Source: Tubulanus polymorphus (Eukaryota > Animalia > Nemertea). From it: DNA of 64,000 bases. A program made the translations under genes and the position numbers. Below are positions 559 to 63,295 of this stretch, piece after piece. The DNA lies in assembly GCF_964204645.1 (NCBI RefSeq), contig NC_134034.1, positions 11,730,962-11,794,961 of the forward strand, read 5' to 3'. A model generated the notes under the pieces. That model was not told where the DNA came from, did not search any database, and saw only the letters and a list, made by a program, of their open reading frames with translations. How positions within the stretch are numbered: position 1 is the first letter of the stretch; the number at the start of each line of letters is the position of its first letter.

Positions 559-1023
559 CTGGCTGTACGGTTGTTGTAGCTCCAGCTTTACCTACACAGG
601 CGGCAAACACTTCCAAATGATTGATAGCATACATCGTTTCAGTCGGGTCATAGGTTAATTTGGGAACGAACAACAGTTCAGCGACATTTGTCAATGGTGG
701 ACTGAATGAAATGCTGGCATTCATGTTATCAAAAGATTCATTTGTCGCAACTTTTGTAAACGATGTCTGTCCTGTTTTCTTGACGAATACATCGGCAGTA
801 AATACGTTTCCATCTATTATGATTTCGTGAACCTCTGCAGCTCCATTAGAACTAGGAGGAAGGATAAACGTTAGATTTGCATTCGTTTTGGACTTCGGAA
901 CTTCCCATCCATTTCCACTTCCAGATAATAGAGATTTCACATCAGTGTTCGGGTCCGTAATAATTCCAGATTCAGTGACAATTTTATTTGATATGACATC
1001 TTTTACCGGTTCCTTACAAACAG
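559..1023 (-). CDS. Exon (465 nt, phase 1-1): F5/8C-like domain type A, copy 4, with short tail
   Basis: TTTATAG|CT acceptor, CAG|GTAATC donor; VCKEPVKD...GWEVPK...DGNV...LEVFAAC. Confidence 0.88.

Positions 1024-63295: not shown

Follow-up and report, generated by a model that had tools for sequence, protein, structure and literature searches.

Two questions were raised by the initial annotation of a 64,000-nt stretch of Tubulanus polymorphus DNA (C10:11,730,962-11,794,961, NC_134034.1; hereafter the window, with positions counted from its first letter), which read it as part of one large mucin-type gene with discoidin-fold domains, built from exons that could be skipped in combination: does a single gene of this kind exist, and do its exons serve combinatorial splicing? 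Our analysis indicates that the window is the middle part of one giant mucus-protein gene on the minus strand. We consider it likely, judging from the sequence, that this single gene makes a secreted polymeric mucin-type protein of ~23,000 aa in its longest form. Alternative splicing of the gene is present and probably limited.

Exon structure of the window

We traced the exons from open reading frames and splice-site scores, independently of the earlier exon list, and obtained a stop-free series of 64 minus-strand exons running from 63295 to 559, with a total of 39,414 nt (Table 1). Symmetric phase 1-1 exons account for 53 of them, five are 1-0, five are 0-1 and one is 0-0, so that the trace reproduces every figure of the initial annotation (64 exons, 39,414 nt, 53 of phase 1-1); at one weak acceptor, 35983 was preferred to 36004 once the earlier total was known, 35983 also being the better-scoring site. 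The window model contains six phase-0 introns, all in folded or Cys-rich modules, in agreement with the earlier statement that the six are confined to folded domains. Coding sequence is concentrated in large exons, with 74% of the coding bases of the window (29,022 of 39,414 nt) falling in 14 exons longer than 800 nt. Long plus-strand reading frames in the window were rejected as antisense shadows of the repeats, and an Rfam search at gathering thresholds gave no match anywhere in it.

Table 1. Features of the window in descending order of position; exon features belong to the hand-built gene model.
Positions	Strand	Feature	Remarks
63492-63776		AT-rich 20/41/61-bp tandem repeat	Intron at window end
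559..63295	-	64 coding exons of the 164-exon mucin gene model	
59354..63295	-	Large PTS exon, 27-bp repeat family	Tandem Repeats Finder
58565-59209, 39714-43475, 12006-14519, 9184-11226		Further copies of the 27-bp PTS family	
57931..58474	-	Discoidin-like domain interrupted by a phase-0 intron (58474-58188 + 58099-57931)	Weak PF00754 match, E 0.075
54631..56766	-	Two discoidin-like domains (56766-56233, 55029-54631)	Three Thr-rich micro-exons (42, 45, 15 nt) between them
45115..53497	-	Four near-identical units, each pairing a 426-nt discoidin exon with a following PTS exon made of 15-bp repeats	
37900-39372	-	Broken LINE-type reverse transcriptase fragments	Longest intron; RVT_1 E 1e-14
32495..37119	-	Two 54-nt + 156-nt Cys-rich exon pairs, PTS exon, basic discoidin domain (33732-33067)	Basic domain: AlphaFold model with Foldseek match to CBM32/discoidin fold
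33842-35983		24-bp form related to the 27-bp PTS family	
32360-33837		Block duplicated at 98% identity directly past the window	Copy at 64521-65999
32122-32361		240-bp TA microsatellite, intronic	The 98%-identical duplicated block (copy 64521-65999) starts at its edge
30402..30839	-	Discoidin-like domain on a single 1-1 exon	
25848..30185	-	4,338-nt PTS exon, the longest in the window, with two Pro-rich families of 24-bp repeats	
23216..24930	-	11 arrayed mini-exons (ten of 72 nt and one of 66 nt), every one having its own intron	Period ~168 bp; last mini-exon joined to 22950 in RNA
22347..22950	-	45-nt PTS exon and TIL-like/PTS exon	Both kept in main RNA contig
20900-21100, 21500-21900, 22100-22300, 18300-18500		High-copy interspersed repeats, intronic	Depth in DNA runs tens to hundreds of times background
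20011..20801	-	Alternatively spliced two-exon cassette (20801-20431 + 20338-20011)	699 nt, 233 aa
17736..18794	-	45-nt PTS exon and discoidin-like domain interrupted by a phase-0 intron	Junctions in RNA
14841..17470	-	Cys-rich block: two TIL + VWC-like modules, short PTS exon	TIL Pfam E 1.6e-4 and 4.8e-4, under curated cut-off; includes four of the neighbours of the phase-0 introns
6649..8798	-	90-nt exon, PTS exon of 45-bp repeats, discoidin-like domain (7092-6649)	
559..5166	-	PTS exon with 63-bp repeats, followed by four discoidin exons that are nearly identical (three fused to 63-bp PTS)	Domain type: AlphaFold pLDDT 85; Foldseek F5/8 type C E 8.7e-7; VIA Z 14-15

The gene beyond the window

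The initial annotation described the gene as open at both ends of the window, with a protein exceeding 13,100 aa. When 100 kb were added per flank, the reading frame continued through 94 upstream and six downstream exons, resulting in a hand-built model of 164 exons that spans 129 kb and encodes 23,004 aa in 69,015 nt without an internal stop, from an ATG at window-equivalent position 127,073 to a stop at -1,953. Within this model the window exons are numbers 95-158 (aa 9,576-22,714). The donors are 162 GT and one GC, two of the upstream ones (78031 and 87851) being weak, and all acceptors are AG; the introns have a median of 265 nt and reach 2,594 nt at most. Phase 1-1 applies to 91 of the 164 exons, and in the head region phases are mixed (17 phase 1, 11 phase 0, 8 phase 2).

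Database searches were run exon by exon, and the joined model served for local counting only. The predicted protein opens with a hydrophobic leader, an EMI-like module recognised by eye, EGF repeats and three VWD-C8-TIL assemblies; these are followed by Cys-rich modules with one weak LDLa and then by ~35 discoidin-like domains alternating with PTS, a region that includes two more Cys-rich blocks, before the gene ends with a VWC-like module and a cystine knot. The flanks thus hold the VWD/C8 assemblies and the C-terminal cystine knot that the initial annotation had proposed to look for there, together with a putative signal peptide, namely a run of hydrophobic residues that follows the ATG at 127,073, as assessed by eye. 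EGF, VWD, C8 and TIL were confirmed in Pfam exon by exon, TIL being above the cut-off in the first assembly and assigned by cysteine pattern in the second and third. Genome scans (268-Mb assembly, 77 contigs) located exactly three units each of VWD and C8 in the locus, every one within the head, and gave no VWD or C8 match in the locus outside the head that could represent a fourth VWD unit or D4. CysD (PF13330) had no match in the gene, its matches in the genome being restricted to a paralogue at C10:10.66-10.67 Mb.

For the third C8, matches were obtained to D3 of MUC5AC, MUC5B, MUC2 and VWF (E 1e-14), and the Gly-Gly-Asp-Cys motif of MUC2 Cys1088 is retained (PMC6739602). Inspection of the D3 region by eye gave no equivalent of Cys1130, and an extra cysteine lies nearby in TIL3; in MUC2, loss of Cys1088 or Cys1130 can leave dimerisation partial or full (PMC7599080). 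For the tail, the best PDB sequence match was the VWF cystine knot (E 9e-4 to 2e-3), Pfam DAN scored E 0.002, which is under the cut-off, and the last two exons together contain 11 cysteines. The 129 kb contain one cystine knot and one VWD/C8 head, and a search within the model for a second head, signal exon or stop exon found none.

Three further features were observed. The third VWD (window-equivalent 112,437-112,064) opens with GDPH (aa 1,172), the self-cleavage motif of some mucins and FCGBP; furin-like sites are located at aa 88 and aa 22,983; and 3' of the cystine knot (window-equivalent -1667 to -1953) about seven copies of a Gly/Ala/Gln/Asn/Pro hexapeptide are found together with the second of these furin-like sites and a short basic tail.

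Discoidin-like domains and PTS repeats

As counted in the initial annotation, the window contains 15 discoidin-like domains, each ~140 aa long, bounded by two cysteines and set between PTS blocks; they represent nine types at 60% identity. The accompanying proposal that domains and PTS reside on separate cassettes needs correction in detail: only seven of the 15 are alone on a 1-1 exon, two are split by a phase-0 intron, and six share their exon with PTS or a linker. Over the whole model there are ~35 such domains of 18 types with a median pairwise identity of 17%. Near-identical domains occur in runs (nine at 80-88 kb, four at 45-53 kb and four at 0.5-4 kb), and three domains are strongly basic with a net charge of +8 to +20.

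AlphaFold models of two of the nine window types, which are very unlike each other, had a pLDDT of 85 and 84 and matched F5/8C, neuropilin b, factor V/VIII C2, discoidin and CBM32 structures (Foldseek E ~1e-6; VIA Z 14-15), and the ESM Atlas likewise gave F5/8C clusters. We regard it as established, at the level of predicted structure, that these two types have the discoidin/F5-8C/CBM32 fold, and the two models support the earlier reading of one large mucin-type gene with discoidin-fold domains. The fold of the remaining window types was assigned by alignment and cysteine pattern. Pfam does not recognise the domain: searching 12 single domains with PF00754 (F5/8 type C) gave none above the curated cut-off (best E 0.033), and a genome scan with PF00754 had no match in this locus.

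These results also bear on the term '15 lectin-fold domains' used in the initial annotation, which can be kept for the fold, with two types modelled and the rest placed by alignment and cysteines, as long as 'lectin' denotes a fold and not an activity. The His/Arg motif of F-type lectins is absent from all 35 domains, and the fold alone is no proof of sugar binding because many of its members are non-lectins. We rejected a mobile element as the identity of the divergent domain since all 22 profile matches in the genome are confined to this locus.

At least six PTS repeat units (15, 24, 24, 27, 45 and 63 bp) were identified in the window by Tandem Repeats Finder. The six units agree with the initial annotation, which had counted at least six chemically distinct families; their chemistry, in contrast, differs little, with Thr at 30-42%, Pro at 11-35%, Gly at 11-22% and charged residues below ~5%. 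About 14,800 residues of the model lie in a PTS-rich context, and its overall composition is 26% Thr, 14% Pro and 8% Ser. Module families reappear far apart along the gene.

Transcript evidence and alternative splicing

Four sequencing runs were compared with positions 17,300-23,299 of the window, one of them being RNA, which was read as contigs. The three non-RNA runs cover the introns, show no splice joints and agree with the assembly across the 6 kb. The RNA run demonstrates that the locus is expressed, as six joints were found in these 6 kb of the 129 kb, all exactly at the predicted sites.

The main RNA contig (1,826 nt, depth 99) carries 22544-22350 at contig positions 75-269 and 18214 at position 318. 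The 48 letters in between correspond to the 45-nt exon 18794-18750 preceded by the final 3 nt of the first exon, so that the contig fits a skip of 20801-20431 and 20338-20011 with all positions base-exact, as deduced from the contig coordinates. In minor contigs (depth 6.4 and 2.7), which stop at the acceptor of the cassette, the two skipped exons are joined to each other. The 699-nt cassette is therefore included at a low level, contig depth being a rough guide. It is a 1-0-1 exon pair whose Cys-rich product contains a Gly/Asn/Phe loop and ends in a short PTS stretch, whereas the 45-nt exons and the TIL-like exon (three symmetric single exons) as well as the discoidin pair are kept in the main contig, whose length is compatible with inclusion of all exons down to 14,841.

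A chimeric contig as the origin of the skip was rejected, the longest word common to the cassette and its neighbours being 8 nt, and so was a genomic deletion as its likely cause, since DNA runs of the same sample contain the skipped exons and no such joint. With regard to the combinatorial splicing put forward in the initial annotation, one in-frame module is alternatively spliced, in its favour, and the symmetric single exons and the discoidin pair are retained, against it; these results come from a single run over 6 kb, and contigs lose rare isoforms. Alternative splicing is present but probably limited, and allelic variation in repeat number is an equally likely source of length variation.

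Relatives in other spiralians

A word-index homologue search with one domain of the 8.3-kb exon gave no match. A profile of the divergent domain, searched against 1.8 billion proteins, yielded 64 matches, the best named ones being spiralian. In proteins of a chiton, a clam and a flatworm, all of them unstudied database predictions, the divergent domain alternates with PTS as in the present gene.

The chiton protein (Liolophura sinensis XP_064614628.1, 'mucin-2-like') has seven domains between PTS stretches. Its gene is flanked by models of 3,696 and 5,807 aa that are 50 and 258 bp away and share a domain at 95% identity; because of these short gaps and the shared domain, the three models (stretch 1-46222) most likely represent one gene encoding at least 11,300 aa, with the split being an annotation artefact. 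In the middle chiton model 14 of 16 donors are phase 1. Two domain exons of the same stretch (13861-14301 and 20880-21320) are missing from the annotation.

The clam protein (Mactra antiquata KAL4226408.1, 6,524 aa) combines 18 weakly scoring domains and PTS with a cystine-knot-like end and, unlike the present model, with TSP1 repeats. In the flatworm protein (Macrostomum lignano PAA50248.1) three VWD units are followed by domains and PTS, and its final 966 codons, containing domains and PTS, lie in a single large exon, whereas the corresponding region is distributed over many exons here.

Discussion

The predicted modules place the gene among the spiralian gel-forming mucins of the hemolectin/F5-8C type. 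According to Lang et al. (2016, PMC4948705), F5/8C domains characterise the mucin-like proteins of lophotrochozoans; compared with these and with insect hemolectin, the present gene has ~35 domains that are invisible to Pfam, no CysD and far longer PTS. Insect hemolectin has 3+2 VWD and the present gene only three, and we do not file the two as orthologues, although they would work alike.

With MUC2, MUC5AC and MUC5B the predicted protein shares a D1-D2-D'-D3-type head with the Cys1088 motif, punctuated PTS and a terminal cystine knot; it differs from them in that discoidin domains replace CysD, D4 is absent, EMI-like and EGF modules precede the head, and PTS is spread over many exons. A MUC2/MUC5 subtype was not assigned, as neither CysD nor a fourth VWD was found. 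MUC6 and MUC19 are also without D4, and human MUC19 has a many-exon, spliced repeat region. Pig submaxillary mucin has ~13,000 aa. Human MUC2 (5,179 aa, PMC3549977) is about one quarter of the size predicted here. SCO-spondin has many TSP1 repeats and an LDLa cluster, in contrast to the single WxxW (in PTS) and one weak LDLa of the present model.

By analogy with MUC2 and VWF, the protein would dimerise tail-to-tail through the cystine knot and head-to-head through D3 (PMC7599080), and its Thr-rich blocks would become O-glycosylated extended spacers. The discoidin domains, which occupy the positions of CysD, may provide non-covalent contacts that govern mesh size or adhesion. Growth of the central region took place by internal duplication of class 1-1 modules, as indicated by the runs of near-identical domains and the 98% block copy, and the symmetric phases, best understood as a precondition of such duplication, reflect this growth; the mixed-phase head, unlike the symmetric centre, did not grow by duplication.

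Besides a gel-forming mucin, we considered a structural component of glue or tubes, comparable to flatworm ap2 or stickleback spiggin and perhaps cleaved after secretion. Macrostomum lignano ap2, a giant secreted VWD-containing glycoprotein of 14,794 aa that was shown to be adhesive, exemplifies the giant VWD/C8/TIL repeat proteins that serve as flatworm adhesives (PMC8621496), and it resembles the present protein in having VWD/C8/TIL/LDLa in front and long repeats in the middle. The three strongly basic discoidin domains, the GDPH in the third VWD and the furin-like sites would suit such a role. The present protein is, however, larger than ap2, which has TSP1 and two long repeat units, and its mucin layout is complete, from the three D assemblies through neutral Thr-rich repeats to the cystine knot; repeats of the ap2 thrombospondin type are absent, the model having a single WxxW. 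We regard a glue or tube component as possible, if improbable; it is compatible with the family assignment and differs from the preferred mucin reading in role only.

According to the second alternative the locus serves combinatorial splicing: tissue or condition would decide which of its many PTS and discoidin cassettes enter the transcript, thereby tuning the length and stickiness of the polymers. Such a device would find its material in the 91 phase 1-1 exons out of 164 and in arrays that are easily skipped in frame (the 11 mini-exons and a nine-copy array of three exons), and the module that is skipped in RNA with minor inclusion shows one cassette in use. There is also precedent: Xenopus FIM-C.1 is highly polymorphic via alternative splicing (PMC7177656), and for the multi-exon PTS of chicken Muc13 a control of length by splicing was proposed (PMC1552070). 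Chicken MUC2 is a precedent as well, polymorphism through splicing having been reported for it, yet its multi-exon PTS showed one characterised splice event and no massive splicing (PMC3549977). All three resemble the present gene in that PTS repeats and small Cys-rich modules occupy exons of their own; they are much smaller and have trefoil, SEA or CysD where the present gene has discoidin. The contrast with vertebrate mucins drawn in the initial annotation was overdrawn, since multi-exon spliced PTS occur in vertebrates (PMC3549977, PMC1552070, PMC7177656) and F5/8C domains are typical of lophotrochozoan mucins (PMC4948705). Nor is 1-1 symmetry a sign of skipping, as had been proposed, because nearly all extracellular mobile modules of animals are class 1-1 (PMC8001218), so that symmetry is expected regardless of splicing, and the chiton relative is alike in this respect. 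Over the 6 kb covered by RNA, where contigs drop rare forms, the main contig kept the TIL exon and the discoidin pair as well as the 45-nt exons, and the flatworm exon of 966 codons indicates that the design needs no cassettes. A combinatorial device is, in our view, unlikely.

More doubtful still is a far-reaching combination in which a single 69-kb transcript yields a secreted 23,000-aa polymer, to our knowledge the largest gel-forming mucin, the 18 domain types bind different partners, splicing by tissue produces mucus, tube or glue, and genes of this type are widespread and split by annotation in spiralians. Finally, two or more tandem genes or repeats inflated by the assembly, with no 23,000-aa protein being made, would fit the restriction of transcript support to 6 kb, the near-identical units (98-99% in places) and the annotation of the chiton relative as three genes, but are very unlikely given that the model contains no second head, signal or stop exon and has short introns (median 265 nt), that the copies are 1-6% different and not identical, that the DNA runs agree with the assembly over the tested 6 kb, and that the chiton split is itself best read as an annotation artefact.

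Both the family and the splicing idea have been described before; novelty lies in the size, in how many discoidin domains there are and how far they have diverged, in the absence of CysD and D4, and in the first observed skip. If the model of a single mucin gene holds, the size range of secreted polymeric mucins reaches ~23,000 aa, and a divergent discoidin domain invisible to Pfam can take the role of CysD in vertebrate mucins. Giant mucins are probably under-counted in spiralian genomes, since the chiton relative is split into three gene models. The locus offers a direct test of the proposal that a multi-exon PTS lets splicing vary mucin length (PMC1552070), one skipped module being visible already in RNA contigs; it reveals no new mechanism.

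Two paralogues are located on the same contig, at C10:10.66-10.69 Mb (minus strand) and C10:11.42-11.45 Mb (plus strand); both have three VWD/C8 and ordinary F5/8C domains, and the former, ~1 Mb away from the present gene, also has seven CysD.
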